A DNA stretch of 64,000 bases from Selaginella moellendorffii (lineage: Eukaryota; Plantae; Lycopodiophyta), in contig NW_003314281.1 of NCBI RefSeq assembly GCF_000143415.4, positions 484,833-548,832 on the forward strand, given 5' to 3'. Below are positions 9,701 through 45,479 of the stretch, piece by piece. A program made the position numbers and the translations under genes. How positions within the stretch are numbered: position 1 is the stretch's first letter; every line of letters begins with the position of its first letter. The notes beneath the pieces were generated by a model, which was given only the letters and a program-made list of their open reading frames with translations, was not told the DNA's origin and made no database searches.

Positions 9701-10430
9701 ATATAAGAAAATTAAACAATTTCAACATATTATATTTTTATATGTAGCCTTAGTTATTTAAAATCTAACTCATTATCAGAAAAAGCTAAGATAATGTATA
9801 CAGTATTTGATTAAACAGTAATATTTAAAATTATTTTTTCTAACTGTAAGTATAGTTTATTAGTACATAATACTATGGAATTACAGTTTCTATAGCATAT
9901 ATATTTAAAAAATATTTTTTTAGTAATTATTTTCATGACTGGATCTGGGTAGTAATATATTAATGTAAACTTATTGTTTTATATTCTAAGTAAAAACCAC
10001 AATTAAGTAATGTCTTGCTAATAAAAATGAGTAATAATTATTCTTAGTAATTATTCTCTTCTGTTTGATAAAATCTTAAAATAAGTTTATCCCAACTAAA
10101 TATATAATTTACATATAACATATTATTAATAATAGAAATTTCATTTTTACTTTTTCTAGGTTGGGTATTTTTCCAAATATATTCATATTTCCAAATAATA
10201 ATTTGTATATATTATTTTTGTTTATGGATATTTATTCTTACTTATGCCTAGGAATATCTTTTGTTCTAAATATTTATATTATCAAGTTTACAAGATTTGA
10301 TTATTGTATTCACCCAATTCTTCTTTCAAAGTGGAACACAATATTTGTTTTCTTATACTATTCCAATTTAATTTTTAATATAAAAAATAATATTTTGCTA
10401 ACTGGGCAGCATATGTTAAGCAAGTGCTAG
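6748..10430 (+). mobile_element. Non-autonomous Helitron inserted in the hAT transposase
   Basis: Absent from hAT copy 2 (compare ~37561-37580). It starts with TC (TCTATCAT), ends with CTAG (caagtgCTAG), sits between A and T (caaagaa|ttactcaaatga) with no TSD, and has an imperfect subterminal hairpin ttgctaac...gttaagcaa at ~10395-10423. No Rep/helicase ORF is seen. Confidence 0.8.
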
Positions 10431-12120
10431 TTACTCAAATGATGAGGAAAAATTAGATAACAACTTTGTAACTATTATGCAAAGTAATTTGTTAACAAAA
10501 AATGGGCTAGTGGCTTGGCAGATATACAGAAATGATATTTCCATGATAGATATATATTCTAATTTAATGGAACTATGGAAAATTATTTCTTTGATACTTA
10601 TGAGCACTACTTGTGTTGAATATAAATCGTGGGATCAGTATTTGACAAACATTCTTCCACTTGTCTGAGCTGAGTTTGCCGAACACTTAGCTCGCGTACA
10701 AGTGGGACAACAATGGCACTACAACTCCTATCATTGTCCACCTGTGAAGTACAAAGTAGATGATTTGGTGTTAGTCCATTTTCCCCATCTTATGGTACAT
10801 GGTTTATCTAAGGGGCTCCTTGCATAGTGGAAAGGACTGTATCGGGTGTTGCAGCAAGTTGGACCACAAGTTTATAAGGTTGGACATGACATCCAACAAG
10901 CCAATCCTCCCGAGATTTTGCATGTACAGTGGTTGAAATGCTTCATACAAAGGGATCAGGAACAGTTAATACCACTTACAGATCTGCCGATGCCTCTTCC
11001 TGAGGTTCCTCCAGATCCCGGCCCATCTACAAGAGAACCCTAATGGTCTTCCATTATTCCGAAAGGAGGGGATGATGTGAGGGCCAAATGTATGGATACG
11101 ATACCGTATACTAATATTAGCGTAGTGGGATTTTGGTAGTGTAAGCGACTAAGTTTTCCATTCTACTTTAGTCACTTAACCACACCTCCGACCACTTGGA
11201 GGAGTCTCACTCACAACCTCCATAAGTCCTATTTTGGATTTGGGCTTTCTAGCCCCGAGAATGGCATCCTCGCCATTCAACCTTTGCACTTCGTCCAAGT
11301 GCTCCATATGTCCGATCCCATGACCGACACCCAAAGTACCACCAACATACTAGCCCGTTATGCTAGGCCATGCCCATTCACCTTGGTCACATCGGTGGTC
11401 CAACACCACATGCATTGCAACCCCGTCTCTCCAAGACCAGGCCTTCCCTCCATGGGTGGTCATCCTAGATCCACTCCTTAGCATCCTTAGGATGCCCGCA
11501 GACATGGGGAATAACCTTCCCCAACATCCCTTTGTCAGTTTCTACCAAGTCCCTTTTTCCGTCCATAGCCATGTTCGCCAACACTGCCACTAGATCAAGG
11601 CCTGCAGGCCCAGCCACTAAGTCCCATTGTCCTTTGGGACTTTCTCACCATGTGACCATATCCGTAGTCACTACACTAGAGGACTGCTCCTCCTCCTTTC
11701 CCGCATTTGGGATTTCGGGACAACATTTCAGAACACCGTGGCCCTACGCGAGCTTCGTGTGTACTCTCCCCACCCTCCGCCTTTAAGTGCTCTAGCCATG
11801 GGCTTAGAATGAAGTTTCGTTGAGCCACACCAGGTATCCAAGTAGGTAGTGCCACCCACACTTGGACTGGGAGCATCGGCCAGTCGATTGTGAGACACAA
11901 AATCCCTAGGCCCCAAAGTGGAGCCGGAAGGGCACCACATGGTAGTGGCCGAAGCGAGAGCCAAACGAGTGTAACACGTTTGGACCAAAAGCTCCGACTT
12001 GAAAAGTCAAGAGCGGGAGTGGAACTCCCAACGAAGTGCTCGAGGAACGAGCACGAAGCGAGCAAAAGGCAAGGCTCCAAAAAGGGACCCAAAAGGACCA
12101 ACACATGACACGTGGGAGTG

Positions 12121-12790
12121 TCCGAGATGGACTCGAGATGGAGTCTGAGATGGAGTCCAAGATGGACCCGAGATGGAGTCCGAGATGGAGTCCGAGATGG
12201 ACCCGAGATGGAGTCCGAGATGGATCCCGAGATGGACCCGAGATGGACCCGAGATGGATCCCGAGATGGAGTCCGAGATGGAGTCCGAGATGGAGTCCGA
12301 GGTGGACCCGAGATGGACCCGAAATGGAGTCCGAGATGGAGTCCGAGATGGATCCCGAGATGGAGTCCGAGATGGAGTCCGAGATGGAGTCCGAGGTGGA
12401 CCCAAGATGGACCCGAGATGGAGTCCGAGATGGAGTCCGAGATGGACCCGAGATGGAGTCCGAGATGGAGTCCGAGATGGACCCGAGATGGACCCGAAAT
12501 GGAGTCCGAGATGGAGTCCGAGATGGACCTGAGATGGAGTCCGAGATGGAGTCCGAGATGGACCCGAGATGGACCCGAGATGGAGTCCGAGATGGAGTCC
12601 GAGATGGAGTCCGAGATGGAGTCCGAAGTCGAGACCGAGACCGGAACCGAGACCGAGACCGAGACCGAGATCGGGACCGAGACCGAGACCGAGGCCGAGG
12701 CCAAGACCGAGCCCGAGCCCGAGTCCGAGTCCGAGTCCGAGTCCGAGTCCGAGTCCGAGTCCGAGTCCGAGTCCGAGTCTGAGTCCGGAG
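12121..12790 (+). repeat. Compound minisatellite in LTR1: GAGATGGAGTCC / GAGATGGACCC units followed by GAGACC, GAGCCC and GAGTCC hexamers
   Basis: Directly visible tandem 11-12-mers and 6-mers. They produce the low-complexity ORFs (WSPR, RDGV, MESE, ES/SP runs). Confidence 0.95.
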
Positions 12791-13794
12791 CCTGAGAGGG
12801 TGAAAGCCCAAAGCGTTCGTCTCCCAGACCCTGGGGGGTTTGGTGAGCTCCAAAAGTATAGTAGGGGGAGGACTGCAGTGGAGCCAGTTTGGCCAGGAAA
12901 GGCCAGTTTGGCCCAGGAAGGCCGGACCCAGTGTTGGGTGATGAGATGCCCACTGGGAAGTCCAAGACTAGAGTGAACACGGACTGACAAGCGGGGTAGC
13001 TTGGTGAAGTGTTCAAGAGCCGGCTCTAGTTCCCCCGGGAGATCGACTGGCCGATGCTCCCAGTCCAAGTGTGGGTGGCACTACCTACTTGGATACCAGG
13101 TGTGGCTCAACGGAACCTCGCTCTAAGCCCATGGCTAGAGCACCTAAAGGCGAAAGGCGGGGAGAGTACCCAGGTGGCTTGCGTAAGGCCACGGTGTTCC
13201 GAAATGTTGTCCCAAAGGCCTAGACTGTGGAAAGGAAGGGGAGCAGTCCTCTGGGGTAGTGACCAAGGACACAGTCGTGTGGTGAGGAAGCCCCAGAGGA
13301 CCATGGGACTTAGTGGTCGGGCCTGTGGGCCTCGATCCAGTGGCAGTGTTGGCAAACACGGCCAGGGGCAAAAAGGGACTTGGTAGGAATTGACAAAGGG
13401 ACTTTGGGGAAGGCGATTCCCCAGGTCTGTGGGCATCCTAAGGATGCTAAGGAGTGGATCTAGGATGACCACTCGTGGACCGATAGCCCAGTCTTGGAGA
13501 GACGGGATGGTGATGCAAGTGGTATTGGACCACTAGTGCAGCAAAGGTGAATGGGCATGGCCTTAGCGTAACGGGCCGAGATGTCAGTGGTACCTTTGGG
13601 TGTCGGTCTTGGGACCGGACACGTGGAGCACTTGGACCAGGTGCAAGTGTTGAGTGGCATGGATGCCATTCTTGGGGCTAGCAAGTCCCAAGTCCTGAAT
13701 TGGACTTAAGGAGGTTGTGAGTGAGACTCCTCCAAGTGGTCGAAGGTGTGGTTAAGTGACTAAAGTAGAATGGAAAAATTAGTCACATACAATT

Positions 13795-13806
13795 TGGTAT
13801 CGGAGC
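13795..13806 (+). other. Primer-binding site (tRNA-iMet type) of the family A element
   Basis: TGGTATCGGAGC lies 3 nt after the LTR1 end, one mismatch from the canonical plant TGGTATCAGAGC. It is absent after LTR2 and LTR3. Confidence 0.8.
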
Positions 13807-16800
13807 TGTTCCTTAGTCCGACTTTTATTGGTGCTCAAGTATATCACCACTAGTGTTGGCATCGGAAGGTCCGAGGAGTGGGCCTATCCTTGAGGAGTAG
13901 CAAGTCTGGAAGACATGGCTCTCCATTACAGTTCATGTGTGAACTTGTAGATGAGGTGGTGGATAGAAAAGGGCCAATAATGGAACAACTTTGGGATCTT
14001 GGGAACAGTGCAAGGTTTTCCTCATTGAGTTGAGGATGTGATCCGGATGAGCATTTGTGTCAGCAAATTGGCTTAGGTTGTTGTGGTAAACAACTAAAGT
14101 TGGGATCACGGGAAAGATAGAGACTCCAAAACAATAAAGGAGTCACAAGATTATCCTCATATAGTTGAGGTTGGTGCTCATGAATGTGAGACCAAAGGTA
14201 ATGACCGTGGAAGGTCAAATACAGAAGAGGACTCAAGTCCTTGAAATGGTAGCCGGGGCTACCTCTAATAAATGCTGGAACAACCCAAAGAGTTGGGGGT
14301 GTATTAAGTGGATGAGTTGGTATTCTCATCACATGGACAAGTAGTCCTAAGGGGCAAAGGTTGCCCCCAGAGAACAAAATCAAGTGTCGGAGTAACACTT
14401 GTGAAAATAGTCCTTTTGAGTAGGACCGGAATGCAAGATGTGTATTCCAGTGAGCTAGTGCCTCACAAGTAGGACCTTACGGGTCGGTGGATTAACCAAG
14501 TCCAAAACTGCTAGACGACTCAAGTAGAGTCAAGGGATGGTCCTAAAAGGACTGAATGAAGCATTTGGACTGAGGTGCATTGTACCCCACAAAGGATGGG
14601 GGGGGATCATAGGATCCAAGGATGAGAACAGAGAGTATCTCATCGATGGCAATGTGCCATGCTAAAGTTATGGGAAAGGTGTTCCCAGAAGAAAACAACT
14701 TTGACATAAAGTTGTGTGTGACCTCTATGGGGCAGTGCTAACAGATGGTTGGCATGAGAAAGAGCGGTGTTGGTCTTGGCAAAGACTTAGACACGAATGG
14801 AAATGTCATAGAGGTAGGCTCGTGGAGCCGATGGTGTGGAGACACCAAATGTGCCAAGGTGTGATACCTTGAGGCTATGTTGGTGGGTTCATTAGAACCC
14901 CTTGCCAAAGGAATCCCAATGGAAATGGGAATGGCATAGCCTAAGCTGCAGAGCATGCAGTTGGAGTGTGGTGACCCAGATAGTGATGGAGGTGTGAAAG
15001 CACCAAGCAATGAGTTGTAGGACTTGACAACTATGAGGCAACTAAGCAAGAGGTGGAAAATAACTGGTTAAATGGGTAGAAGGTAGCTACCCAAGACTTC
15101 TAGTATAGGGAAGTCAGATATACCCTTACGGGGGATAAGTTGCTTATGTTGCAATATAGTAAGTCAATGTCATAAAAGGAAATACTCATTGTCAAGAAAG
15201 CCATCATTGGGACACCCGAACACTCTAGAACACCATAAAGTGGTGTTTGATGTCGCGAGGGCAATGGATAAAGCCCAAGGGACTAAGTCCCTAGCGAATG
15301 ATGGATAGAAGGTGCTATCCAAATGTCCAAGGTTGCGGAGACAGGAGAGGACTGTCTACCCAAGTTGGACAAAGCCAAAAATGGAATTTTGGCAAGGCTA
15401 GTGATGGGCATGTAAAGGCCCATAAGCAACAATGTAACCCCAGTGTGTGGGATTATAAGCTGAGCATACCTGGATTGAGGAACCACTCCCTGGGCTATTG
15501 GGTAGGTTCATCCCTAAGAATACTTGCTAAGGCATGATAGAAAGTGCAAAGCTATCCTCCTGGTCTGGAGGAGAATGACCGAAGGAAAGGTGTGAAGCCA
15601 AAGGCAAGTAGTGTTGGGATGGAACTGAACCATAGAAATCAAAGGGCATATCCAACAGTGGTTATGAAAGTTGGGAGTGGAGAATCAAGAGGGTGCTCGA
15701 GGATGTTGTTGCTAGCAACCGTGATGCCATGGAGAGTCTAAAATATGGAATTGTCCATGTTAGATTATATGGCAACTATAAAGCTTGCGAAAGGGGAGGC
15801 CTTAGCAAGCTGAGGGACAGAGTTCCTTCAAGGTTCCCAAAGACGATTCTAGGTAGCGTAGTACCTAGAAAGGCCAAGGGTAAATGGTTCATGGAACGCG
15901 CGAAATCAGAGTGGCGCAGCAGAAGCGTGGTCTTGAAGCTTGCCATGAGGCAAGGTTATCAAGGTTAGGGAAGTAGTTCCCGAGTGTTCAAAGAGAGGGC
16001 TTTGAACGAAAGTCGATGGTCAAGGACTTTCACGCTTATGCAGGAACCATGTTACAATGGTCGGAGGACTTGCCAAGCGAGATTGGCACGTCGGGGGAAC
16101 AAAGACCCTTGTTGAAGGTGATATCTTCAAAAAGGGTGGGCCAGGGGGCCGAGCATGGAGGAGTCCATGCATGATCACAGACATGTCAAGTGAGAGGACT
16201 TGGCAGTGTGGAGGAACTAGGTTCCTAAGCTGTGATCTGTAGCGCGCTTTAAAAATAGGTTGGTGCACCGGCGTGGGGAGTCACGCCAGGCATCTAGTGT
16301 GATGCCGTCCGTAGATGCATATACGGAGGTTGGGTTCGAGTCCCGACCCTCTAGTGCTTGGGTTCGAGTCCCAAATCACTAGGGCGTGGTGATGGTTTGG
16401 AATATGAGGACACTCATATTTCGGTGGTCATGGACTCTCAGTGGGGAGACTGGTTTGGGCACACCGCCAAGCGAGGGATGCCTCGGAGTCGTGATGCACG
16501 GTTAGATTGCTTAGTGTGAAAGCTCAGCATATCTAACTTGAACGCTTTGGTGCAAGTGGCACCAAGGTCGTGGTGAGTGAGATGGGGACACCTAATCTCA
16601 GTTGCTATGAACCCTTGGCCGTAAGGGCTAGCTTGGGTGCACCGCCAAGTGTGGGGGATGCCCCCGGGGTTATAGTCAACAACTTGGAGGTCTAGAAAAC
16701 CAAGTACCTCTTGGCAACTCTGTTAAGGTGCCAAGGTGAGATCACTAGGTGATCTTATGGCCAGATAAGGACAAGGTCCTTGGTTGGCTAAGGAATGAAG

Positions 16801-18069
16801 TTCCTGGTTCAAAATGTTGAAATTGAACTGTTTAAGGTGGTGTGGCTTGGTCGTGATAACCAAGTGGGAAGAGCACCTAAGGGAAATAAACTATGTCCGT
16901 GCGATGGCATAGTGAGTCTGAGGAAAGTAGTCTCTATAAAAGACCCATGGGACGGTCACGAAGTTGGGCCGTGGATAGAGCCCATAGCAGAAGATGCTAA
17001 AGAGACGTACTAGGGGTGAACGTCCTCCGGACTTGGCAAAGAAGAGTCTTTGCTATGGAACCGAAACAATACCTCAAGGAGGGAGGTAGAGATTCGATGT
17101 TGCTTGGTGCAACAATCAACGGATAGGAGCAAAAGATGAGTGGCCAAGATAGGGCTGTGGAATCCCTTGGAAGGAATCCAAGTGACAAAGTTAGGCGAGG
17201 AACACTAATGTGTTGGACGCTAACAAGTTGCGGGAAAGGATTTGTGTTTCCAAGGAGGGATTCCGAAATGCTCCGAGTTGGCGAAAGTGGAAGCTCCAAG
17301 GGAGGGAGTGGTAAGGTAGCCAAATGATAGGGCCATGAACAGCCCTAGCACAAAGCATGATAACTGGAACTTTGGCACGAAATAGAAGAGAGGATGATGG
17401 TGCCCTCGAGTAGAGAACTTCCTAGGATGGGAAGTGGAGTTGCACAAAAGGTGCAAGGCAAGGTGTCGGAGACACCTAGGAAATTGACTCCAAGAAGTCA
17501 AAAATTCAAAGTTCCAAAGTGCAAAGGTTATATCGATGGAAATTGAGACTACTCGAGAAGGAGTAGTGGGATTGACTTAGAGAAGGGTCTCTAAGAGGTT
17601 TAGTGAGAACTAAACCAATAAAAGGATGAACCATTACATGTGGTCCAATCAGTCTCTAAATTGGAGAGACTACGCTCCTTAAAGGATGGACAAGGCATGG
17701 TGAGCCTTTGATGTCAAACCATAGACAAAGATTGGCTAGGTGCCAAAGATGGAAATGGTAACACATGTGGGTGTTACTTTATGAAAGGGTTTACCGTTCG
17801 ATGAGGACATCGAACTTCGTCTATGGGTGGTGGAGTTGTGAGACACAAAATCCCTAGGCCCCAAAGTGGAGCCGGAAAGGGTGCCACGTGGTAGTGGCTG
17901 AAGCGAGAGCCAAACGAGCGTAACACGTTTGGACCAAAATCTCCGACTTGAAAAGTCAAGAGCGGGAGTGGAACTCCCAAAGAAGGGCTCGAGGAACAAG
18001 CATGAAGCGAGCAAAAAGCGAGGCTCCAAAAAGGGACCCAAAAGGACCAACACATGACACGTGGGAGTG

Positions 18070-18443
18070 TCCGAGATGGACTCGAGTTGGAGTCCGAAGT
18101 GGAGTCCAAGATGGACCCGAGTTGGAGTCCGAAGTGGAGTCCGAGATGGAGTCCGAAGTGGAGTCCGAGGTGGACCCGAGATGGAGTCCGAGGTGGAGTC
18201 CGAGATGGACCCGAGATGGAGTCCGAGATGGAGTCCGAGATGGAGTCCGAGGTGGACCCGAGATGGACCCGAAATGGAGTCCGAGATGGAGTCCGAGATG
18301 GACCCAAGATGGAGTCCGAGATGGAGTCCGAGATGGACCCGAGATGGACCCGAGATGGAGTCCGAGATGGAGTCCGAGATGGAGTCCGAGATGGAGTCCG
18401 AGATGGAGTCCGAGATGGAGTCCGAAGTCGAGACCGAGACCGG

Positions 18444-18487
<44 letters not shown>

Positions 18488-18600
18488 TCGGGACCGAGAC
18501 CGAGACCGAGGCCGAGGCCGAGACCGAGCCCGAGCCCGAGTCCGAGTCCGAATCCGAGTCCGAGTCCGAGTCTGAGTCCGAGTCCGAGTCTGAGTCCGGA
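18070..18600 (+). repeat. Same compound minisatellite in LTR2 (shorter)
   Basis: Same units, fewer copies, with GAAGTGGAGTCC variants. Confidence 0.95.
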
Positions 18601-21600
18601 GCCTGAGAGGGTGAAAGCCCAAAGCGTTCGTCTCCCAGACCCTGGGGGGTTTGGTGAGCTCCAAAAGTATAGTAGGGGGAGGACTGCAGTGGAGCCAGTT
18701 TGGCCAGGAAAGGCCAGTTTGGCCCAGGAAGGCCGGACCCAGTGTTGGGTGATGAGATGCCCACTGGGAAGTCCAAGACTAGAGTGAACACGGACTGACA
18801 AGCGGGGTAGCTTGGTGAAGTGTTCAAGAGCCGGCTCTAGTTCCCCCGGGAGATCGACTGGCCGATGCTCCCAGTCCAAGTGTGGGTGGCACTACCTACT
18901 TGGATACCAGGTGTGGCTCAACGGAACCTCGCTCTAAGCCCATGGCTAGAGCACCTAAAGGCGAAAGGCGGGGAGAGTACCCAGGTGGCTTGCGTAAGGC
19001 CACGGTGTTCCGAAATGTTGTCCCAAAGGCCTAGACTGTGGAAAGGAAGGGGAGCAGTCCTCTGGGGTAGTGACCAAGGACACAGTCGTGTGGTGAGGAA
19101 GCCCCAGAGGACCATGGGACTTAGTGGTCGGGCCTGTGGGCCTCGATCCAGTGGCAGTGTTGGCAAACACGGCCAGGGGCAAAAAGGGACTTGGTAGGAA
19201 TTGACAAAGGGACTTTGGGGAAGGCGATTCCCCAGGTCTGTGGGCATCCTAAGGATGCTAAGGAGTGGATCTAGGATGACCACTCGTGGACCGATAGCCC
19301 AGTCTTGGAGAGACGGGATGGTGATGCAAGTGGTATTGGACCACTAGTGCAGCAAAGGTGAATGGGCATGGCCTTAGCGTAACGGGCCGAGATGTCAGTG
19401 GTACCTTTGGGTGTCGGTCTTGGGACCGGACACGTGGAGCACTTGGACCAGGTGCAAGTGTTGAGTGGCATGGATGCCATTCTTGGGGCTAGCAAGTCCC
19501 AAGTCCTGAATTGGACTTAAGGAGGTTGTGAGTGAGACTCCTCCAAGTGGTCGAAGGTGTGGTTAAGTGACTAAAGTAGAATGGAAAAATTAGTCACATA
19601 TACTACCCAAGACTTCTAGTATAGGGAAGTCGAATATACCCTTACGGGGGATAAGTTGCTTATGTTGCGATATAGTAAGTCAATGTCATAAAAGGAAATA
19701 CTCATTGTCAAGAAAGCCATCATTGGGACACCCGAACACTCTAGAACACCAGAAGGTGGTGTTTGATGTCGCGAGGGCAATGGATAAAGCCCAAGGGACT
19801 AAGTCCCTAGCGAATGATAGATAGAAGGTGCTATCCAAATGTCCAAGGTTGCGGAGACAGGAGAGGACTTTCTACCCGAGTTGGACAAAGCCAAAAATGG
19901 AATTTTGGCAAGGCTAGTGATGGGCATGTAAAGGCCCATAAGTAACAATGTAATCCCAGTGTGTTGGATTATAAGGTGAGCATACCCGGATTGAGGAACC
20001 ACTCCCTAGGCTATTGGGTAGGTTCATCCCTAAGAATACTTGCTAAGGCATGATAGAAAGTGCAAAGCTATCCTCCTGGTCTGGAGGAGAATGACCAAAG
20101 GAAAGGTGTGAAGCCAAAAAGTAAGAAGTAAGGGGATAGAACCGAACCATAGGAATCAAAGGGCATAACCAAGGTTGGTTATGAAAGTTGGGAGTGGAGA
20201 ATCAAGAGGGTGCTCGAGGATGTTGTTGCTAGCAACCGTGATGCCATGGAGAGTCTAAAATATGGAATTGTCCATGTTAGATTATATGGCAACTATAAAG
20301 CTTGCGAAAGGGGAGGCCTTAGCAAGCTGAGGGACAGAGTTCCTTCAAGGTTCCCAAAGACGATTCTAGGTAGCATAGTACCTAGAAAGGCCAAGTGTAA
20401 ATGGTTCATGGAACGCGCGAAATCAGAGTGGCGCAGCAGAAGCGTGGTCTTGAAGCTTGCCATGAGGCAAGGTTATCAAGGTTAGGGAAGTAGTTCCCGA
20501 GTGTTCAAAGAGAGGGCTTTGAACGAAAGTCGATGGTCAAGGACTTTCACGCTTATGCAGGAACCATGTTACAATGGTCGGAGGACTTGCCAAGCGAGAT
20601 TGGCACGTCGGGGGAACAAAGACCCTAGTTGAAGGTGATATCTTCAAAAAAGGTGGGCCATGGGGCCGAGCATGGAGGAGTCCATGCATGATCACAGACA
20701 TGTCAAGTGAGAGGACTTGGCAGTGTGGAGGAACTAGGTTCCTAAGCTGTGATCTGTAGCGCGCTTTAAAAATAAGTTGGTGCACCGGCATGGGGAGTCA
20801 CGCCAGGCATCTAGTGTGATGCCGTCCGTAGATGCATATACGGAGGTTGGGTTCGAGTCCCGACCCTCTAGTGCTTGGGTTCGAGTCCCAAATCACTAGG
20901 GCGTGGTGATGGTTTGGAATATGAGGACACTCATATTTCGGTGGTCATGGACTCTCAGTGGGGAGACTGGTTTGGGCACACCGCCAAGCGAGGGATGCCT
21001 CGGAGTCGTGATGCACGGTTAGATTGCTTAGTGTGAAAGCTCAGCATATCTAACTTGAACACTTTGGTGCAAGTGGCACCAAGGTCGTGGTGAGTGAGAT
21101 GGGGACACCTAATCTCAGTTGCTATGAACCCTTGGCCGTAAGGGCTAGCTTGGGTGCACCGCCAAGTGTGGGGGATGCCCCCGGGGTTATAGTCAACAAC
21201 TTGGAGGTCTGGAAGACCAAGTACCTCTTGGCAAATCTGTTAAGGTGCCAAGGTGAGATCACTAGGTGATCTTATGGCCAGATAAGGACGAGGTCCTTGG
21301 TTGGCTAAGGAATGAAGTTCCTGGTTCAAAATGTTGAAATTGAACTGTTTAAGGTGGTGTGGCTTGGTCGTGATAACCAAGTGGGAAGAGCACCTAAAGG
21401 AAATAAACTATGTCCGTGCGATGGCATAGTGAGTCCGAGGAAAGTAGTCTCTATAAAAGACCCATGGGACGGTCACGAAGTTGGGCCGTGGATAGAGCCC
21501 ATAGCAGAAGATGCTAAAGAGACGTACTAGGGGTGAACATCCTCCGGACTTGGCAAAGAAGAGTCTTTGCTATGGAACCGAAACAATACCTCAAGGAGGG

Positions 21601-22585
21601 AGGTAGAGATTCGATGTTGCTTGGTGCAACAATCAACGGATAGGAGCAAAAGATGAGTGGCCAAGATAGGGCTGTGGAATCCCTTGGAAGGAATCCAAGT
21701 GACAAAGTTAGGCGAGGAACACTAATGTGTTGGACGCTAACAAGTTGCGGGAAAGGATTTGTGTTTCCAAGGAGGGATTCCGAAATGCTCCGAGTTGGCG
21801 AAAGTGGAAGCTCCAAGGGAGGGAGTGGTAAGGTAGCCAAATGATAGGGCCATGAACAGCCCTAGCACAAAGCATGATAACTGGAACTTTGGCACGAAAT
21901 AGAAGAGAGGATGATGGTGCCCTCGAGTAGAGAACTTCCTAGGATGGGAAGTGGAGTTGCACAAAAGGTGCAAGGCAAGGTGTCGGAGACACCTAGGAAA
22001 TTGACTCCAAGAAGTCAAAAATTCAAAGTTCCAAAGTGCAAAGGTTATATCGATGGAAATTGAGACTACTCGAGAAGGAGTAGTGGGATTGACTTAGAGA
22101 AGGGTCTCTAAGAGGTTTAGTGAGAACTAAACCAATAAAAGGATGAACCATTACATGTGGTCCAATCAGTCTCTTAATTGGAGAGAATACGCTCCTTAAA
22201 GGATGGACAAGGCATGGTGAGCCTTTGATGTCAAACCATAGACAAAGATTGGCTAGGTGCCAAAGATGGAAATGGTAACACATGTGGGTGTTACTTTATG
22301 AAAGGGTTTACCGTTCGATGAGGACATCGAACTTCGTCTATGGGTGGTGGAGTTGTGAGACACAAAATCCCTAGGCCCCAAAGTGGAGCCGGAAGGGCGC
22401 CACATGGTAGTGGCCGAAGCGAGAGCCAAACAAGCGTAACACGTTTGGACCAAAAGCTCTGACTTGAAAAGTCAAGAGCGAGAGTGGAACTCCCAACGAA
22501 GTGCTCGAGGAACGAGCACGAAGCGAGCAAAAGGCGAGGCTCCAAAAAGGGACCCAAAAGGACCAACACATGACGCGTGGGAGTG

Positions 22586-23258
22586 TCCGAGATGGAGTCC
22601 GAAGTGGAGTCCGAGATGGACCCGAGATGGAGTCCGAGATGGAGTCCGAGATGGACCCGAGATGGACCCGAAATGGAGTCCGAGATGGAGTCCGAGGTGG
22701 ACCCGAGATGGAGTCCGAGATGGAGTCCGAGATGGACCCGAGATGGACCCGAGATGGAGTCCGAGATGGAGTCCGAGATGGAGTCCGAGGTGGACCCGAG
22801 ATGGACCCGAAATGGAGTCCGAGATGGAGTCCGAGATGGACCCGAGATGGAGTCCGAGATGGAGTCCGAGATGGAGTCCGAGGTGGACCCAAGATGGACC
22901 CGAGATGGAGTCCGAGATGGAGTCCGAGATGGACCCGAGATGGAGTCCGAGATGGAGTCCGAGATGGACCCGAGATGGACCCGAAATGGAGTCCGAGATG
23001 GAGTCCGAGATGGACCTGAGATGGAGTCCGAGATGGAGTCCGAGATGGACCCGAGATGGACCCGAGATGGAGTCCGAGATGGAGTCCGAGATGGAGTCCG
23101 AGATGGAGTCCGAAGTCGAGACCGAGACCGGAACCGAGACCGAGACCGAGACCGAGATTGGGACCGAGACCGAGACCGAGGCCGAGGCCAAGACCGAGCC
23201 CGAGCCCGAGCCCGAGTCCGAGTCCGAGTCCGAATCCGAGTCCGAGTCCGAGTCCGGA
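22586..23258 (+). repeat. Same compound minisatellite in LTR3
   Basis: Same units; shares the GGACCTGAG variant with LTR1. Confidence 0.95.
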
Positions 23259-26200
23259 GCCTGAGAGGGTGAAAGCCCAAAGCGTTCGTCTCCCAGACCC
23301 TGGGGGGTTTGGTGAGCTCCAAAAGTATAGTAGGGGGAGGACTGCAGTGGAGCCAGTTTAGCCAGGAAAGGCCAATTTGGCCCAGGAAAGCTAGACCCAG
23401 TGTTGGGTGATGAACTGACCACTGGGAAGTCCAAGACTAGAGTGAACACGGACTGACAAGCGGGGTAGCTTGGTGAAGTGTTCAAGAGCCGGCTCTAGTT
23501 CCCCCGGGAGATCGACTGGCCGATGCTCCCAGTCCAAGTGTGGGTGGCACTACCTACTTGGATACCAGGTGTGGCTCAACGGAACCTCGCTCTAAGCCCA
23601 TGGCTAGAGCACCTAAAGGCAAAAGGCGGGGAGAGTACCCAGGTGGCTTGCGTAAGGCCACGGTGTTCCGAAATGTTGTCCCAAAGGCCTAGACTGTGGA
23701 AAGGAAGGGGAGCAGTCCTCTGGGGTAGTGACCAAGGACACAGTCGTGTGGTGAGGAAGCCCCAGAGGACCATGGGACTTAGTGGTCGGGCCTGTGGGCC
23801 TCGATCCAGTGGCAGTGTTGGCAAACACGGCCAGGGGCAAAAAGGGACTTGGTAGGAACTGACAAAGGGACTTTCGGAAAGGCGATTCCCCAGGTCTGTG
23901 GGCATCCTAAGGATGCTAAGGAGTGGATCCAAGATGACCACTCGTGGACAGATGGCCCAGTCTTGGAGAGACGGGATGGTGATGCAAGTGGTATTGGACC
24001 ACTAGTGCAGCAAAGGTGAATGGGCATGGCCTTAGCGTAACGGGCCGAGATGTCAGTGGTACCTTTGGGTGTCGGTCTTGGGACCGGACACGTGGAGCAC
24101 TTGGACCAGGTGCAAGTGTTGAGTGGCATGGATGCCATTCTTGGGGCTAGCAAGTCCAAGTCCTGAATTGGACTTAAGGAGGTTGTGAGTGAGACTCCTC
24201 CAAGTGGTCGAAGGTGTGGTTAAGTGACTAAAGTAGAATGGAAAAATTAGTCACATATACTACCCAAGACTTCTAGTATAGGGAAGTCGAATATACCCTT
24301 ACGGGGGATAAGTTGCTTATGTTGCGATATAGTAAGTCAATGTCATAAAAGGAAATACTCATTGTCAAGAAAGCCATCATTGGGACACCCGAACACTCTA
24401 GAACACCAGAAGGTGGTGTTTGATGTCGCGAGGGCAATGGATAAAGCCCAAGGGACTAAGTCCCTAGCGAATGATAGATAGAAGGTGCTATCCAAATGTC
24501 CAAGGTTGCGGAGACAGGAGAGGACTTTCTACCCGAGTTGGACAAAGCCAAAAATGGAATTTTGGCAAGGCTAGTGATGGGCATGTAAAGGCCCATAAGT
24601 AACAATGTAATCCCAGTGTGTTGGATTATAAGGTGAGCATACCCGGATTGAGGAACCACTCCCTAGGCTATTGGGTAGGTTCATCCCTAAGAATACTTGC
24701 TAAGGCATGATAGAAAGTGCAAAGCTATCCTCCTGGTCTGGAGGAGAATGACCAAAGGAAAGGTGTGAAGCCAAAAAGTAAGAAGTAAGGGGATAGAACC
24801 GAACCATAGGAATCAAAGGGCATAACCAAGGTTGGTTATGCCAGCTGGGAGTGGAGAATCAAGAGGGTACTCGAGGATGTTGTTGCTAGCAACCGTGATG
24901 CCATAGAGAGTCTAAAATATGGAATTGTCCATGTTAGACTATATGGCAACTATAAAGCTTGCGAAAGGGGAGGCCTTAGCAAGCTGAGGGACAGAGTTCC
25001 TTCAAGGTTCCCAAAGACGATTCTAGGTAGCATAGTACCTAGAAAGGCCAAGTGTAAATGGTTCATGGAACGCGCGAAATCAGAGTGGCGCAGCAGAAGC
25101 GTGGTCTTGAAGCTTGCCATGAGGCAAAGTTATCAAGGTTAGGGAAGTAGTTCCCGAGTGTTCAAAGAGAGGGCTTTGAACGAAAGTCGATGGTCAAGGA
25201 CTTTCACGCTTATGCAGGAACCATGTTACAATGGTCGGAGAACTTGCCAAGTGAGATTGGCACGTCGGGGGAACAAAGACCCTAGTTGAAGGTGATAACT
25301 TCAAAAAAGGTGGGCCATGGGGCCGAGCATGGAGGAGTCCATGCATGATCACAGACATGTCAAGTGAGAGGACTTGGCAGTGTGGAGGAACTAGGTTCCT
25401 AAGCTGTGATCTGTAGCGCGCTTTAAAAATAAGTTGGTGCACCGGCATGGGGAGTCACGCCAAGCATCTTGTGTGATGCCGTCCGTAGATGCATATACGG
25501 AGGTTGGGTTCGAGTCCCGACCCTCTAGTGCTTGGGTTCGAGTCCCAAATCACTAGGGCGTGGTGATGGTTTGGAATATGAGGACACTCATATTTCGGTG
25601 GTCATGGACTCTCAGTGGGGAGACTGGTTTGGGCACACTGCCAAGCGAGGGATGCCTCGGAGTCGTGATGCACGGTTAGATTGCTTAGTGTGAAAGCTCA
25701 GCATATCTAACTTGAACACTTTGGTGCAAGTGGCACCAAGGTCGTGGTGAGTGAGATGGGGACACCTAATCTCAGTTGCTATGAACCCTTGGCCGTAAGG
25801 GCTAGCTTGGGTGCACCGCCAAGTGTGGGGGATGCCCCCGGGGTTATAGTCAACAACTTGGAGGTCTGGAAGACCAAGTACCTCTTAGCAACTCTGTTAA
25901 GGTGCCAAGGTGAGATCACTAGGTGATCTTATGGCCAGATAAGGACGAGGTCCTTGGTTGGCTAAGGAATGAAGTTCCTGGTTCAAAATGTTGAAATTGA
26001 ACTGTTTAAGGTGGTGTGGCTTGGTCGTGATAACCAAGTGGGAAGAGCACCTAAGGGAAATAAACTATGTCCGTGCGATGGCATAGTGAGTCCGAGGAAA
26101 GTAGTCTCTATAAAAGACCCATGGGAGGGTCACGAAGTTGGGCCGTGGATAGAGCCCATAGCAGAAGATGCTAAAGAGACGTACTAGGGGTGAACGTCCT

Positions 26201-27242
26201 CCGGACTTGGCAAAGAAGAGTCTTTGCTATGGAACCGAAACAATACCTCAAGGAGGGAGGTAGAGATTCGATGTTGCTTGGTGCAACAATCAACGGATAG
26301 GAGCAAAAGATGAGTGGCCAAGATAGGGCCGTGGAATCCCTTGGAAGGAATCCAAGTGACAAAGTTAGGCGAGGAACACTAATGTGTTGGACGCTAACAA
26401 ATTGCGGGAAAGGAAGTGTGTTTCCAAGGAGGGATTCCGAAATGCTCCGAGTTGGCGAAAGTGGAAGCTCCAAGGGAGGGAGCGGTAAGGTAGCCAAATG
26501 ATAGGGCCATGAACAGCCCTAGCACAAAGCATGATAACTGGAACTTTGGCACGAAATAGAAGAGAGGATGATGGTGCCCTCGAGTAGAGAACTTCCTAGG
26601 ATGGGAAGTGGAGTTGCACAAAAGGTGCAAGGCAAGGTGTCGGAGACACCTAGGAAATTGACTCCAAGAAGTCAAAAATTCAAAGTTCCAAAGTGCAAAG
26701 GTTATATCGATGGAAATTGAGACTACTCGAGAAGGAGTAGTGGGATTGACTTAGAGAAGGGTCTCTAAGAGGTTTAGCGAGAACTAAACCAATAAAAGGA
26801 TGAACCATTACATGTGGTCCAATCAGTCTCTAAATTGGAGAAACTACGCTCCTTAAAGGATGGACAAGGCATGATGAGCCTTTGATGTCAAACCATAGAC
26901 AAAGATTGGCTAGGTGCCAAAGATGGAAATGGTAACACATGTGGGTGTTACTTTATGAAAGGGTTTACCGTTCGATGAGGACATCGAACTTCGTCTATGG
27001 GTGGTGGAGTTGTGAGACACAAAATCCCTAGGCCCCAAAGTGGAGCCGGAAGGGCGCCACATGGTAGTGGCCGAAGCGAGAGCCAAACAAGCGTAACACG
27101 TTTGGACCAAAAGCTCCGACTTGAAAAGTCAAGAGCGAGAGTGGAACTCCCAACGAAGTGCTCGAGGAACGAGCACGAAGCGAGCAAAAGGCAAGGCTCC
27201 AAAAAGGGACCCAAAAGGACCAACACATGACACGTGGGAGTG

Positions 27243-27787
27243 TCCGAGATGGACTCGAGATGGAGTCCGAGATGGAGTCCGAGATGGACCCGAGATGGAG
27301 TCTGAGATGGAGTCCGAGATGGAGTCCGAGGTGGACCCGAGATGGACCCGAGTTGGAGTCCAAAGTGGAGTCCGAGATGGACCCGAGATGGAGTCCGAAA
27401 TGGAGTCCGAGATGGAGTCCGAGGTGGACCCGAGATGGACCCGAAATGGAGTCCGAGATGGAGTCCGAGATGGACCCGAGATGGAGTCCGAGATGGAGTC
27501 CGAGATGGAGTCCGAGGTGGACCCGAGATGGACCCAAAATGGAGTCCGAGATGGAGTCCGAGATGGACCCGAGATGGAGTCCGAGATGGAGCCGAGATGG
27601 ACCCGAGATGGAGTCCGAGATGGAGTCCGAGATGGAGTCCGAAGTCGAGACCGAGACCGGAACCGAGACCGGGACCGAGACCGAGACCGAGATCGGGACC
27701 GAGACCGAGACCGAGGCCGAGGCCAAGACCGAGCCCGAGCCCGAGTCCGAGTCCGAATCCGAGTCCGAGTCCGAGTCCGAGTCCGGA
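27243..27787 (+). repeat. Same compound minisatellite in LTR4
   Basis: Same units, different copy number. Confidence 0.95.
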
Positions 27788-29086
27788 GCCTGAGAGGGTG
27801 AAAGCCCAAAGCGTTCGTCTCCCAGACCCTGGGGGGTTTGGTGAGCTCCAAAAGTATAGTAGGGGGAGGACTGCAGTGGAGCCAGTTTAGCCAGGAAAGG
27901 CCAATTTGGCCCAGGAAAGCTAGACCCAGTGTTGGGTGATGAACTGACCACTGGGAAGTCCAAGACTAGAGTGAATACGGACTGACAAGCGGGGTAGCTT
28001 GGTGAAGTGTTCAAGAGCCGGCTTTAGTTCCCCCGGGAGATCGACTGGCCGATGCTCCCAATCCAAGTGTGGGTGGCACTACCTACTTGGATACCAGGTG
28101 TGGCTCAACGGAACCTCGCTCTAAGCCCATGGCTAGAGCACCTAAAGGCAAAAGGCGGGGAGAGTACCTAGGTGGCTCGCGTAAGGCCACGGTGTTCCGA
28201 AATGTTGTCCCAAAGGCCTAAACTGTGGAAAGGAAGAGGAGCAGTCCTCTGGGGTAGTGACCAAGGACATAGTCGTGTGGTGAGGAAGTCCCAGAGGACC
28301 ATGGGACTTAGTGGTCGGGCCTGTGGGCCTCGATCCAGTGGCAGTGTTGGCAAACACGGCCAGGGGCAGAAAGGGACTTGGTAGGAACTGACAAAGGGAC
28401 TTTCGGAAAGGCGATTCCCCAGGTCTGTGGGCATCCTAAGGATGCTAAGGAGTGGATCCAAGATGACCACTCGTGGACAGATGGCCCAGTCTTGGAGAGA
28501 CGGGATGGTGATGCAAGTGGTATTGGATCACTAGTGCAGCAAAGGTGAATGGGCATGGCCTTAGCGTAACGGGCCGAGATGTCAGTGGTACCTTTGGGTG
28601 TCGGTCTTGGGACCGGACACGTGGAGCACTTGGACCGGGTGCAAGTGTGGAGTGGCATGGATGCCATTCTTGGGGCTAGCAAGTCCCAAGTCCTAAATTG
28701 GACTTATGGAGGTTGTGAATGAGACTCCTCTAAGTGGTTAGAGGTGTGGTTAAGTGACTAGAGTAGAATGGAAAAATTAGTCGCTTACATCCTCCAAGTG
28801 GTCGGAGGTGTGGTTAAGTGACTAAAGTAGAATGGAAAAATTAGTCCCTTACATCGATCTCCCAGGGGATCTAAAGCCGGCTCTTGAACACTTCACCAAG
28901 CTACCCCGCTTGTCGGTCCATGTTCACTCTAGTCTTGGACTTCCCAGTGGGCAGCTCATCACCCAACACTGAGAACAACCTTCCTAGGCCAAACTGGCTC
29001 CACTGCAATCCTCCCCTTACTATACTTTTGGAGCTCACCAAACCCCCCAGGGTCTAGGAGGCGAACGCTTTGGGCTTTCACCCTCT

Positions 29087-29556
29087 CAGACTCGAACTCG
29101 GACTCAGAGTCAGACTCGGACTCAGACTCGGACTTGAGCTCGGGCTCGGGCTCAGTCTCAGCCTCGGTCTTGGTCTTGGTCCCGGTCTCGATCTCGGTCC
29201 CGGTCTCGGTCTCGGTCCCGGTCTCGGTCTCGGTCCCGGTCTCGGTCTCGGTCTCGGTCCCGGTCCTGGTCCCGGTCTCAATCTTGGTCTCGGTCGCAGC
29301 CCGGTTGGGGTCTCGGTCCCGATCTCGGTCTCGACCTCGGACTCCATCTCGGGTCCTTCTCGGACTCCATCTCGGACTCTGTCTTGGTCCATCTCGGACT
29401 CCATCTTGGGTCCATCTCGGACTCCGTCTCGGTCCATCTCGGGTTCATCTCAGACTCCATCTCGGTCCATCTCGGACTCCGTCTCGGTCCATCTCGGGTC
29501 CATCTCGGACTCCATCTCAGATTCCATCTTGGATTCCATCTTAGACTCCATCTCAG
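29087..29556 (-). repeat. Same minisatellite, reverse-complemented and more diverged, in the outer solo LTR
   Basis: GGACTCCATCTC, GGTCTC and GGACTC units. Confidence 0.9.
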
Positions 29557-31099
29557 GCACTTCCACGTGTCATGTGTTCATCTTTTGGGTCCCTTTTTTA
29601 GAGCCTCGCTTATTGCTCACTTCGTGCTTATTCCTCGAGCACTTTGTTGGGGGTTCCACTTCTGCTCTCGACCTATCAAGTCGAAGCTTTTAGTCCAAAC
29701 GTGTTACGCTCGTTTGGCTTTTGCTTTGGCCACTACCACGTGGTGCCCTTCCAGCTCCACTTTGGGGCCTAGGTATTTTATGTCTCACAGGTAGCTGTCA
29801 AATTGGTTTAAATCCAGACCACTTGCTCCTATATATAAATTAGGGTTTTTGAGCTAATTGATATGCATATTTTTTATATTCCCTTTCCATATTCCAAGCA
29901 CTCACAAGAGGTATAAATTAATTTTTATCTTCCACAATGAAAAACAATTGTAATATTCACAAGAAGGAAAAGAAAGTTTGCCCTGCAAAATGCTAAACTT
30001 AATTGCCCTGCAAATTTGAAGCTTGTGGCAGTGGCAATAGTGTTCAGTAGCTTTGCATTCGTTACACCATGAGCCAGCACAAGGTTCTTAAGTATACAAT
30101 AGAAACATCACTATGTGAGAAGAAATACTCCAGTTTTTTCTTTCCCAAGTAGGTGGCAAACTATAAGACCTGGTTGAAAGGGAGAGTTCTGCACAGTACA
30201 CACTAGAAGATGGCCATGCTGCGTGTTTGAAGCCAACTTTTCTCTAGGCCTGGAAGAAGAAGCTTTAAGTTTATGGAATTTATAGAGCAAGAGTACGAGA
30301 TACAACAGGTTTCTATATACTATTATTCCCTTCCACGGCTGTGCAATAGTTTGTTGTGCAACAGTAGAAAGGGCGCTACCGAGACGAAGAAAACAGTCTT
30401 GTGTGTGTCAGATCATTGTTGTCAAACAACATTGATCGATCTGGAATCACAGCACTAGTGCCAGATCGCTCCAGTTTCTCGTCTGACCGTTTGTCGTGTG
30501 AAAGTTTTATGAAGTTGCTCTCTCCACTCATCTTCACAGACAGCAGTAATTAGCTCCTTTCTTCGTCTTCTTCATTGATTCTTCTTCGCTTTCTTCTCTA
30601 CTTTTTCTTTCTTCCCCCTGTGTAGTTCGTGCTGCTTCTGTGGAGAGCACCAGCCCAAGCTATACCACAAAGTCCATCCTACTGTAGCGATAGTCATCAA
30701 CAGTATAGTGGTCATGTTCTTGAGAGATCCTACCGCGATTTAACGAGCAAGAAAGGGAGTGATGTTTGCATGGCGGGACAAGCATGGCACAGGTTTTGTA
30801 GATCCCTATACGAGTCTTTAGCTTCCTTTCGTTGAGGGGTCAAAAAATTCAAGCTTTGTTCTTTTCTCATGAATATTTTTTCTTGGTCCTGGTCCCTTGT
30901 GTGTCTGAAGCATCTATCTCATAGCTAGGAACATTTTCAAGAGACCAGCAGAGCGGAAAACATTGATTTAAAACAAACATCTCGTATATAACACCCAGCG
31001 TATTCTTCTCGTCCCAGTCGAACTTCATCCTGTGTTCTTCCCAAAGCTTCCACAGGCATTTTCTAGTTTCTGTTCTTCTTTTTTCTTGTTGATGGTGCC

Positions 31100-38042: not shown

Positions 38043-38101
<59 letters not shown>

Positions 38102-44876: not shown

Positions 44877-45330
44877 ATGCAGATGGGTCGATCTCCTTGC
44901 TGCGAGAAAATCGGTCTCAACAGGGGTCCATGGACTCGTGAAGAAGACACGCTCCTCACGCAGTATGTCAACGAGCACGGCGAAGGGTCTTGGAGAACGC
45001 TTCCAATGGCCGCAGGTTTGATCCGCCCAAATCTCATTCCACTCCTTGTCTCTACATTCTCTGAGATTTTTTCTCGTGGTTGCTAGATTTCCTCTAGACA
45101 AGCCATGTTTGCGTCGTAGCTAGTTAGAACGTCCCTATTCTTTTATATACTCCGCTCAAGCTTGATGTTTGCAGTGTCTTTGTCGCAACTAGCAGCATTG
45201 TCAAACAAAGCACTCGTTTTTTATTGATTCGCTCGTGACCAGTCGCTTGAAGTGGTCAGAAGGCTCGTGCTATCATAGATTCGCTCGTGATGAGTAGCTT
45301 GAAGTGCTCGGAAGGCTCGTGCTATCATAG
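44877..45330 (+). pseudogene. Second truncated R2R3-MYB: exon 1 (44877-45015) plus most of intron 1, fused to the ARM copy 3 upstream region
   Basis: Near-identical to 51058-51460, with LPKAAG changed to LPMAAG. Homology begins at ~44778 and ends at ~45330, before the exon 2 acceptor. Confidence 0.85.
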
Positions 45331-45479
45331 AACGAAAGTAGTAGCTTACTTGCTTATGCCAGCAACATGAGAAAGACATTCAAGCGGCTTTGAAGTCGTC
45401 AATACCACGGTCACCAGGCTTAGCTGGACCCATGCAAGAGCCGCCTCCTCAAATGCCCAGAACTCCTTGAACACTAAAC

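Follow-up and report, generated by a model that had tools for sequence, protein, structure and literature searches.

The window analysed here is a 64-kb stretch of the genome of the spikemoss Selaginella moellendorffii (contig NW_003314281.1, positions 484,833 to 548,832; coordinates below are those of the window). It contains a 17-kb complex (11889–28853) with four direct long terminal repeats (LTRs), which lies inside an older, inverted solo LTR of its own family. No copy of the LTR family was found in the other 45 kb of the window. The host LTR, H, is present on the minus strand as a 3′ part (11140–11888), which is the reverse complement of LTR positions ~1154–1903, and a 5′ part (28854–29789), which is that of positions 1–1158. 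The two parts overlap by 5 bp, and these constitute the target duplication TCGAT (11884–11888 and 28854–28858), the only one that flanks the whole complex. The sequence of H thus resumes without a gap beyond the insert, which has TCGAT at either side; this marks the entry of the outermost element into H as a nested insertion, exactly where the earlier note had placed it. H is itself bounded by a duplication of the same length, GGTAG (CTACC in the sense of H; 11135–11139 and 29790–29794), so that target duplications are 5 bp long at both levels. Its identity to the inner LTRs is about 85% (110–114 mismatches in 749 bp, 110 of them to LTR1). As H is a solo LTR with a duplication of its own, LTR-LTR recombination acts on this family; a high ratio of solo to intact elements has been described in another Selaginella species (PMC5750206).

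All components of the complex lie on the plus strand. LTR1 (11889–13791, 1903 bp) is a chimera that reads TGTGAG...CATACA. Its end, ...CACATACA, is followed by ATT and, 3 nt after the LTR, by the primer-binding site TGGTATCGGAGC (13795–13806). This site agrees at 11 of 12 positions with TGGTATCAGAGC, taken as the plant initiator-Met tRNA site. The full interior, int1 (13792–17836, 4045 bp), ends in a G-rich, polypurine-like tract, ATGGGTGGTGGAGT (17823–17836), directly upstream of LTR2, and the same tract precedes LTR3 and LTR4. LTR2 (17837–19602, 1766 bp) is of one sequence type, ‘b’, throughout. It is followed by a truncated interior that is homologous to 15087–17836 and has no primer-binding site (int2, 19603–22353), by the chimeric LTR3 (22354–24259, 1906 bp), by a further truncated interior (int3, 24260–27010), and by LTR4 (27011–28789, 1779 bp), which represents a separate, older lineage. 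The starts of LTR3 (22354) and LTR4 (27011) given here correct those of the earlier note. The last component, F64 (28790–28853), consists of the final 64 bp of a further, older LTR. LTR1, LTR4, F64 and H all end in CA, and LTR2 and LTR3 in TA. The LTR carries a variable 12-bp minisatellite, which differs in length by 128 bp between LTR3 and LTR4; the BLAST figure of 95–96% identity between units is due mainly to length changes of this kind.

The sense strand of int1 is rich in purines and in G, and it contains no open reading frame of at least 120 amino acids. The ten longest interior reading frames have no Pfam match at E values up to 0.1. A protein search found no relatives of two LTR reading frames, and a metagenome scan for family copies returned one match, by chance. 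Direct LTRs, a primer-binding site, a purine-rich tract, a duplication of fixed length and the lack of gag/pol capacity together give the element the features of a LARD-like retrotransposon.

The ends of LTR2 and LTR3 both read ...CACATATA|CTACCCAAGA, and CTACCCAAGA is also found in the first interior, where it begins at 15087. As the earlier note had observed, both LTR termini are joined directly to this interior position, and the truncated units skip 1295 bp (13792–15086), the primer-binding site included. The terminal dinucleotide at both junctions is the non-canonical TA instead of CA. Both junctions lie within a shared 887-bp tract that contains no mismatch and one indel and that includes the CA-to-TA change, which shows that they are copies of one event. 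The join point coincides with the centre (15086|15087) of a perfect 10-bp palindrome, GGTAG|CTACC (15082–15091, plus strand), one of only two such palindromes in the 4045-bp interior, and the pentamer that follows the join, CTACC, is H’s own duplication. The join point is preceded by a C-free, G-rich tract that starts with an 8-mer of the polypurine tract: ATGGGTRG has just two occurrences in the interior, one 15 nt upstream of the junction and one within the polypurine tract, 14 nt before the LTR.

A third LTR terminus, that of LTR4 (...CGCTTACA, 28789), is joined to a point 64 bp before another LTR end, as had also been claimed. Positions 28790–28853 correspond to the final 64 bp of an LTR and terminate in ...CCCTTACA, directly before TCGAT. 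F64 differs from H at 2 of 64 positions, from LTR1 at 3 and from the end of LTR4 at 5, and about half of the states that are private to LTR4 are those of the outgroup H. If deletions or duplications broke at random, a breakpoint within 2 bp of an LTR end would be expected at roughly 5 of 8000 positions; the two LTR-terminus junctions are therefore not due to chance.

Site patterns reveal the composition of the chimeric LTRs. The 3′ 1010 bp of LTR1 are identical to LTR2 except for the last-but-one base. Its 5′ ~880 bp, the minisatellite included, resemble LTR3 and LTR4: the first 231 bp differ from LTR2 at 12 sites and one indel and from LTR3 and LTR4 at four to seven sites (‘a’ type), and the minisatellite is closest to that of LTR3 (9 mismatches, versus 23 to LTR2). 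LTR3 is LTR4-like at 16 sites up to 23954 and is identical to LTR2 from 23955 to its end. At six sites between 13026 and 13291 (LTR1 coordinates) LTR3 has the state of LTR1 and LTR2, while the sites on either side, and 13152 inside, are LTR4-like, so that LTR3 is not a clean two-parent chimera. With regard to the interiors, int1 differs from int2 at 28 of 580 sites in 15087–15666, where int2 equals int3, which indicates that the interior lineage switches at the LTR2|int2 junction. Over the remaining stretch, int1 and int2 differ at 17 of 2170 sites, and int3, whose first 581 bp are identical to int2, differs from it at 28 of 2170. Outside the shared tract, the truncated units are thus 1.3% different in the interior and 2.4% in the LTR (24 of 1010 sites between LTR3 and LTR4).

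Divergence rises outwards, as successive nesting would predict. The LTRs of the innermost element, B, differ at 1 of 1010 sites (0.1%), and B looks like a discrete young element. The ‘a’-type LTRs, presumed to be the pair of an element A (the 5′ part of LTR1, and LTR4), differ by ~1.7% (4 of 231 sites), with 1.3% between LTR3 and LTR4 and 3% between LTR1 and LTR3; F64 is nearer to H than to LTR4; and H is ~15% diverged.

Combining these observations, we consider it rather probable that the locus is a pile of four generations from a single family of non-coding, presumably helper-dependent LTR retrotransposons, later reshaped by ordinary homologous recombination. Only the anatomy of the first two steps of the history proposed here (H, and an element Z in H) is read directly from the sequence; the four later steps are inferred from it. 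An old copy would have been reduced to the solo LTR H, keeping its duplication GGTAG, and Z would have integrated into H in the opposite direction, creating the TCGAT duplication. Element A would then have integrated 64 bp before the end of Z’s 3′ LTR, and the young element B into A’s interior at 15087. A crossover between an upstream LTR and B’s 5′ LTR, near the end of the minisatellite, could have deleted the intervening DNA and left the chimeric LTR1. Finally, an unequal exchange between LTR2 and A’s 3′ LTR may have copied the block ‘LTR tail | 15087...’ once, giving the chimeric LTR3, with the distal part (the rest of int3, LTR4 and F64) contributed by a diverged haplotype via an allelic crossover. 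The simplest explanation for the clustering of these insertions lies in a presumed abundance of the family and in the survival of insertions in existing repeats of a compact, gene-dense genome, perhaps with a contribution from a chromatin or sequence bias of the helper’s integrase; self-recognition is not needed.

Several observations sit less comfortably with this history. The two inner insertions (at 15087 and 64 bp before the LTR end) retain only their right-hand junctions. The absence of the left halves fits deletion by LTR recombination without proving it, and, as the left-hand duplications have gone with them, integrase action at these two insertions rests on one junction each. LTR2 and LTR3 end in TA and not in CA, LTR3 is more mixed than a chimera of two parents should be, and random nesting does not predict a junction at the centre of a palindrome. 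Furthermore, a plain molecular clock contradicts a simple duplication after the arrival of B, given 28 of 2170 differences between int2 and int3 and 24 of 1010 between LTR3 and LTR4 against 1 of 1010 between B’s LTRs, and an additional haplotype switch or gene conversion must therefore be assumed. Of the history put forward in the earlier note, nesting, LTR-LTR recombination and the copying of a unit without a primer-binding site are retained, as the predicted chimeric LTRs and outward-rising ages are both seen, whereas a simple unequal crossover between sister chromatids is not supported, as the truncated units differ by 1.3% outside the shared tract and the LTRs of the younger element by 0.1%.

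Two haplotypes may have been joined in the third unit, whether by a genuine crossover or by a mistake in the assembly. As the published genome was assembled from Sanger reads of a heterozygous plant, the two haplotypes’ copies of the block ‘int(15087..)-LTR’ could have been placed one after the other by an assembler that jumped, within the LTR repeat, from A’s 3′ LTR into the end of LTR2. On this reading, the plant itself would carry only three LTRs at the locus, and just one unit lacking a primer-binding site. Identity over 887 bp at the junction next to 1.3% and 2.4% elsewhere, versus 0.1% for B, is what a distal unit from the other haplotype would show, the two assembled haplotypes of S. 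moellendorffii differ by ~1.5%, and the switch point in LTR3 falls inside repeated LTR sequence. A real unequal exchange plus allelic crossover would give the same sequence, however, the 128-bp minisatellite difference would help an assembler to tell LTR3 from LTR4, and long-read assemblies of plants commonly contain tandem LTR-element arrays, which are polymorphic (PMC11899658), so that we regard an artefact as unlikely, if still a chance to be reckoned with. Far more doubtful is assembly of the whole complex outside the chromosome in one round, through template switches among co-packaged RNAs, recombination between multiple cDNAs or a tandem read-through transcript, followed by a single integration. 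The single duplication around the entire complex would suit such a route, and for rice both complex elements bounded by duplications and a model of recombination before integration have been reported (bioRxiv 10.1101/452573); both routes are left open in PMC11899658. But two co-packaged RNAs could not provide the four or more sequence lineages present at the locus, the outward increase in divergence is that of stepwise nesting, F64 is closer to the old host LTR than to the neighbouring LTR4, and template switching would yield complete interiors with a primer-binding site and not units that start at 15087.

The join point itself invites further readings. In autointegration, integrase attaches the LTR end to a site inside the same cDNA or inside one packaged together with it. 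The product here would be a deletion circle made up of one LTR and the interior from 15087, exactly the composition of the repeated unit, and it would then have entered a resident copy by homologous recombination. One-LTR deletion circles with the interior up to the integration site have been described for a plant element (PMC7197481), and yeast Ty1 deletion circles cluster at the central polypurine-tract flap, as related there with reference to Garfinkel 2006. The position of the join at one of two palindrome centres among 4045 positions and the pairing of ATGGGTRG with the true polypurine tract point the same way, but both coincidences were noticed post hoc, the sequence before the junction resembles the polypurine tract weakly (8 of 14 positions, equalled or bettered by ~100 interior windows), and there is no junction at the closest match to the tract (17427, 12 of 14). 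Models of a circle plus recombination also need extra conversions to reproduce the site patterns: they predict either a wholly resident-type LTR1, the 3′ kilobase of which is in fact that of LTR2, or an int2 equal to int1, which differ at 28 of 580 and 17 of 2170 sites. An origin of the junction on unintegrated cDNA is accordingly improbable in our judgement. Slightly less so is the idea that 15086|15087 may serve as an inherent hot spot of the helper’s integrase, on cDNA or chromatin, that repeatedly yields ‘LTR | 15087...’ units, a reading that draws on the palindrome centre, the C-free G-rich tract with the polypurine 8-mer and the pentamer CTACC, at which another, independent insertion of the family took place. 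If true, such units, as deletion circles or self-nestings, would seed tandem arrays and provide a path, encoded in the sequence, by which a non-coding retroelement turns into a satellite. The strong claim of the earlier note, an active preference of the family’s or helper’s integrase for its own sequence or chromatin, with arrays growing by repeated self-insertion, has a somewhat better but still small chance. Three successive insertions into earlier copies of the same family, none of which occurs in the other 45 kb, and the pentamer CTACC shared by two independent events (H’s duplication and the 5 bp after LTR2; ~6/1024 by chance among four duplications) are in its favour. Yet the window was chosen for its odd appearance, selection against genic insertions in a compact genome would lead to clustering of the same kind, chance self-nesting becomes much more likely if the family is very abundant, GCTACC is no rare hexamer (23 occurrences in the window versus 17 expected), and the other two duplications (TCGAT and TCCTC) differ from CTACC.

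Taken as stepwise nesting reshaped by homologous recombination, the locus is a well-resolved example of known processes; self-seeking by the element is not demonstrated. It preserves a clear natural history of the accumulation and trimming of LTR elements in a small plant genome: the four generations can be ranked by age, and the sites of exchange are marked by two recombinant LTRs. It also illustrates that a unit without a primer-binding site, itself incompetent for replication, can still gain copies via recombination. The locus would carry greater weight if the junction recurred across the genome or if the family landed in itself more often than its abundance predicts, which would connect the integrase’s choice of targets with the origin of tandem repeats.

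Nested insertions, solo LTRs and tandem LTR-element arrays within one duplication are already known in plants. With LARD-type elements the family shares LTRs of 1.8–1.9 kb, a 4-kb interior without gag/pol, a primer-binding site, a polypurine-like tract and 5-bp duplications, and it differs from them in the variable 12-bp minisatellite of its LTR. The resemblance to autointegration circles, known from retroviruses, Ty1 and Arabidopsis SISYPHUS (PMC7197481; PMC2644782), is one of form only: 15087–17836 plus one LTR, with a terminus joined to an interior site, is here chromosomal and arrayed, and the site patterns fit nesting better. A double transposon insertion has been proposed as a seed of satellite DNA from Drosophila population data (McGurk and Barbash 2018, PMC5932611). 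The idea is shared, in that insertions recurring at one place would yield a tandem dimer open to expansion by unequal exchange, but the present case is one locus, with two truncated units, that shows no sign of having expanded further. The earlier designation as a megasatellite is accordingly not upheld: one full and two truncated units, the latter without a primer-binding site, are present in place of many head-to-tail copies, and the 64-kb window holds no further copies of the unit. Nested insertions with later LTR-LTR recombination, which produce solo LTRs and ‘complex’ elements, are catalogued by tools such as LTRtype (PMC5379124). The insertion with intact duplication in an older LTR, the solo-LTR host, the recombinant LTR1 and the older outer layers are all of this kind, whereas the membership of all four layers in one non-coding family and the survival of two of three nestings as a right-hand junction only set the locus apart. 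Similar in outline are the tandem LTR-retrotransposons of plants, in which LTRs and interiors alternate with shared internal LTRs (LTR-interior-LTR-interior-LTR) within one flanking duplication (Morales-Diaz et al. 2025, PMC11899658), and the tandem arrays of Cassandra and TRIM elements (PMC7215508, PMC4528315). Here, too, LTRs and interiors alternate in one direction inside a single 5-bp duplication, and the inner LTRs are chimeric, in keeping with unequal LTR exchange. Unlike the repeats of those arrays, which in the sense of PMC11899658 comprise a complete interior and an LTR, the second and third units lack the primer-binding site and 1295 bp and start exactly at an LTR terminus, and the array brings together several lineages of different age instead of one element multiplied.

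The order of the parts of the retroelement complex was established on the + strand from self-comparison of the window and from alignments. The complex is hosted by an older solo LTR of the same family, H. Its inverted 3′ part (11140-11888, with TCGAT at its end) and inverted 5′ part (28854-29789, with TCGAT at its start) have exactly 5 bp of LTR sequence in common, which shows that the complex was inserted into H and that 5 bp were duplicated in the process. As H has a target duplication of its own, GGTAG, at 11135-11139 and 29790-29794, it is a solo LTR. Between its two parts lie, all in the + orientation, LTR1 (11889-13791), the full interior int1 (13792-17836) with the primer-binding site TGGTATCGGAGC at 13795-13806, LTR2 (17837-19602), the truncated interior int2 (19603-22353), which is homologous to 15087-17836, LTR3 (22354-24259), a second truncated interior, int3 (24260-27010), LTR4 (27011-28789) and F64, the final 64 bp of an LTR (28790-28853). 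In the self-comparison, the repeat family has no copy elsewhere in the 64-kb window beyond 11132-29794.

LTR1-LTR4 are 1766-1906 bp long. Each LTR contains 34-45 copies of a 12-bp minisatellite, GTCCGAGATGGA, which passes gradually into a 6-bp repeat (12120-12790, 18069-18600, 22585-23260, 27242-27790 and 29139-29554). Nearly all of the variation in LTR length stems from this minisatellite, as do long spurious ORFs on either strand. A gapless repeat comparison put the identity of the 5′ ends of the LTRs at 85%, a value discarded as the effect of a 1-bp indel. The interior contains no ORF of at least 120 aa, and Pfam gave no match for any of its ten longest ORFs, so that the element is non-coding, as the earlier note had proposed. 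Protein homologue searches with two LTR ORFs, one of 121 aa and one of 446 aa in the minisatellite, returned no match for either. A 20-nt word from the LTR end has a single exact metagenome match, at 2631-2650 of contig JACCEE011421582.1; this contig is AT-rich and without other similarity, and the match is attributable to chance.

The genes around the complex are ordinary, namely three ARM-repeat paralogues and Myb-type ORFs. The paralogues, at 516-2972 (818 aa), 45480-47885 (801 aa) and 31414-33874 (a split copy with one ORF of 327 aa and one of 414 aa), match the plant U-box ARM region weakly in Pfam, and the split copy is 1.6 kb from the retroelement pile. A 52-bp tandem duplication (45226-45347) lies just upstream of the second of these genes. 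The ORFs with a Myb DNA-binding domain, at 51652-52323 and 55308-56369, are probably exons of Myb genes. Two AT-rich stretches (8000-10000 and 36000-38000) have a GC content of 0.28-0.29, compared to 0.45-0.5 in the adjoining sequence, and a (TA)33 run occupies 38033-38098.

At both the LTR2 and LTR3 junctions, CACATATA is joined directly to CTACCCAAGA, which in int1 follows GGTAG at 15087 (GGTAG/CTACCCAAGA). The end of LTR1, CACATACA, is followed by ATT and then by the primer-binding site; LTR4 ends in CGCTTACA, and F64 ends in CCCTTACA followed by TCGAT. All three junctions at LTR termini that had been reported previously hold, with the caveat that LTR2 and LTR3 terminate in TA in place of the expected CA. 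The tract that spans both junctions (19297-20183 and 23955-24840) is 887 bp long with 0 mismatches and 1 indel, and this, together with the TA end common to both, shows that a single event was copied to give the two junctions. The flank of H also starts with CTACC, the pentamer present directly after LTR2 and LTR3 (15087-15091 in int1). A further junction of H with the interior at 15087 was considered and rejected, as there is no homology past the pentamer: the CTACC beside H is H's own duplication in the element sense.

To trace lineages, all variable sites were listed for the four LTRs, with H as the outgroup, and for the three interiors. The 3′ 1010 bp of LTR1 differ from LTR2 at one site, the terminal CA/TA, while over the 5′ 231 bp it is separated from LTR2 by 12 sites and an indel, from LTR3 by 7 sites and from LTR4 by only 4, and its minisatellite is nearest to that of LTR3. 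Judged by these site patterns, LTR1 is a chimera, exactly as predicted if a young element B (LTR-int1-LTR2) had lodged in an older copy, A, and its 5′ LTR had then recombined with an upstream LTR. Between int1 (15087-15666) and int2, 28/580 sites differ and int2 equals int3 over the same stretch, which places a lineage switch at the LTR2/int2 junction. LTR3 has 16 sites in common with LTR4 up to 23954 and is identical to LTR2 from 23955 on, a pattern that an exchange between LTR2 and the downstream LTR would yield.

The divergence of the layers gives these events an order. The LTRs of B differ by 0.1%, the presumed A pair (the LTR1 5′ part and LTR4) by 1.7%, the 5′ ends of the LTRs of this type, which includes LTR3, by 1.3-3%, and H differs from all other LTRs by ~15%; F64 differs from the LTR4 end at 5/64 sites and from H at only 2. 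The layers become older outwards, which fits stepwise chromosomal nesting and speaks against the arrival of the whole as one complex insertion. The same order argues against a 64-bp slippage duplication as the source of F64, which was rejected given that F64 is closer to H than to the adjacent LTR4 end. The chimeric LTR1 and LTR3 and the ages largely agree with the history suggested in the earlier note, in which repeated self-insertion was followed by LTR-LTR recombination and unequal crossover; a caveat has to be added, namely a haplotype switch or an assembly join in the third unit.

A simple sister-chromatid duplication of the truncated unit after the insertion of B does not fit the sites observed. 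It would make int2 and int3 at least as alike as B's LTRs, yet beyond the 887-bp tract 28/2170 sites separate int2 from int3, and 24/1010 separate LTR3 from LTR4. At that rate, ~11 differences are expected in the 887-bp tract and 13 between B's LTRs, compared to 0 and 1 observed. Furthermore, about half of the states private to LTR4 are those of the outgroup H, which identifies LTR4 as an older lineage in its own right rather than a copy that has mutated. The simplest reconciliation is a switch to the other haplotype ~581 bp into int3. It may reflect a genuine allelic crossover or else an assembly join of two haplotypes; in the latter case the third unit would not exist. At six sites within its LTR4-like part (13026-13291 in LTR1 coordinates), LTR3 has the LTR1/2 state, so that gene conversion or a mosaic parent was also involved.

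A minor rival derives the unit in which an LTR end meets 15087 from a circle or from autointegration. Ty1 autointegrates at central polypurine-tract flaps, and a plant element forms deletion circles (PMC7197481) that have the same make-up as the unit repeated here. Two features of the junction recall these cases. The position 15086/15087 is the center of a perfect 10-bp palindrome, GGTAG/CTACC (15082-15091), and only 2 such centers exist among 4045 interior positions, the other being at 15714 with arms of at least 6. The interior contains just two copies of the 8-mer ATGGGTRG, at 15072-15079, 15 nt before the junction, and at 17823-17830, within the real polypurine-like tract 14 nt before the LTR. 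However, a strong internal polypurine tract at 15072-15086 was downgraded after whole-tract comparison: the match is only 8/14, ~100 windows are equal or better, and a closer look-alike (12/14, 17427-17440) has no junction. Three circle models were compared with the site patterns and rejected, since each of them assigns LTR1, int2 or LTR3 to a lineage other than the one observed: the one-LTR circle, the end-joined (NHEJ) circle of a cDNA primed internally at a polypurine tract, and the deletion circle with subsequent recombination. The shared CTACC pentamer may hint at an integrase target preference or be due to chance; neither of the remaining duplications, TCGAT and TCCTC, matches it, and GCTACC is no rarity within the window. 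All of these coincidences (palindrome, 8-mer and pentamer) were spotted post hoc.

Four nested generations at a single spot are suggestive of self-targeting. However, the window had been selected for its odd look, and in a genome of ~100 Mb with 37.5% repeats (PMC5750206) surviving insertions tend to fall in existing repeats. The megasatellite envisaged as the product of self-targeting is not borne out, as two truncated units make no satellite here.

Plants commonly have polymorphic tandem arrays of LTR elements enclosed by a single duplication, and whether such arrays arise by unequal exchange or by complex insertion is a matter of open debate (PMC11899658). Cassandra and TRIM elements form long arrays (PMC7215508, PMC4528315), double insertion has been shown to seed satellites in Drosophila (PMC5932611), a model of recombination before integration has been put forward for rice (bioRxiv 10.1101/452573), and solo LTRs are reported to form efficiently in another Selaginella species (PMC5750206). 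To these precedents the present locus adds a unit that lacks the primer-binding site and starts at an LTR terminus, and an order of events that can be read.
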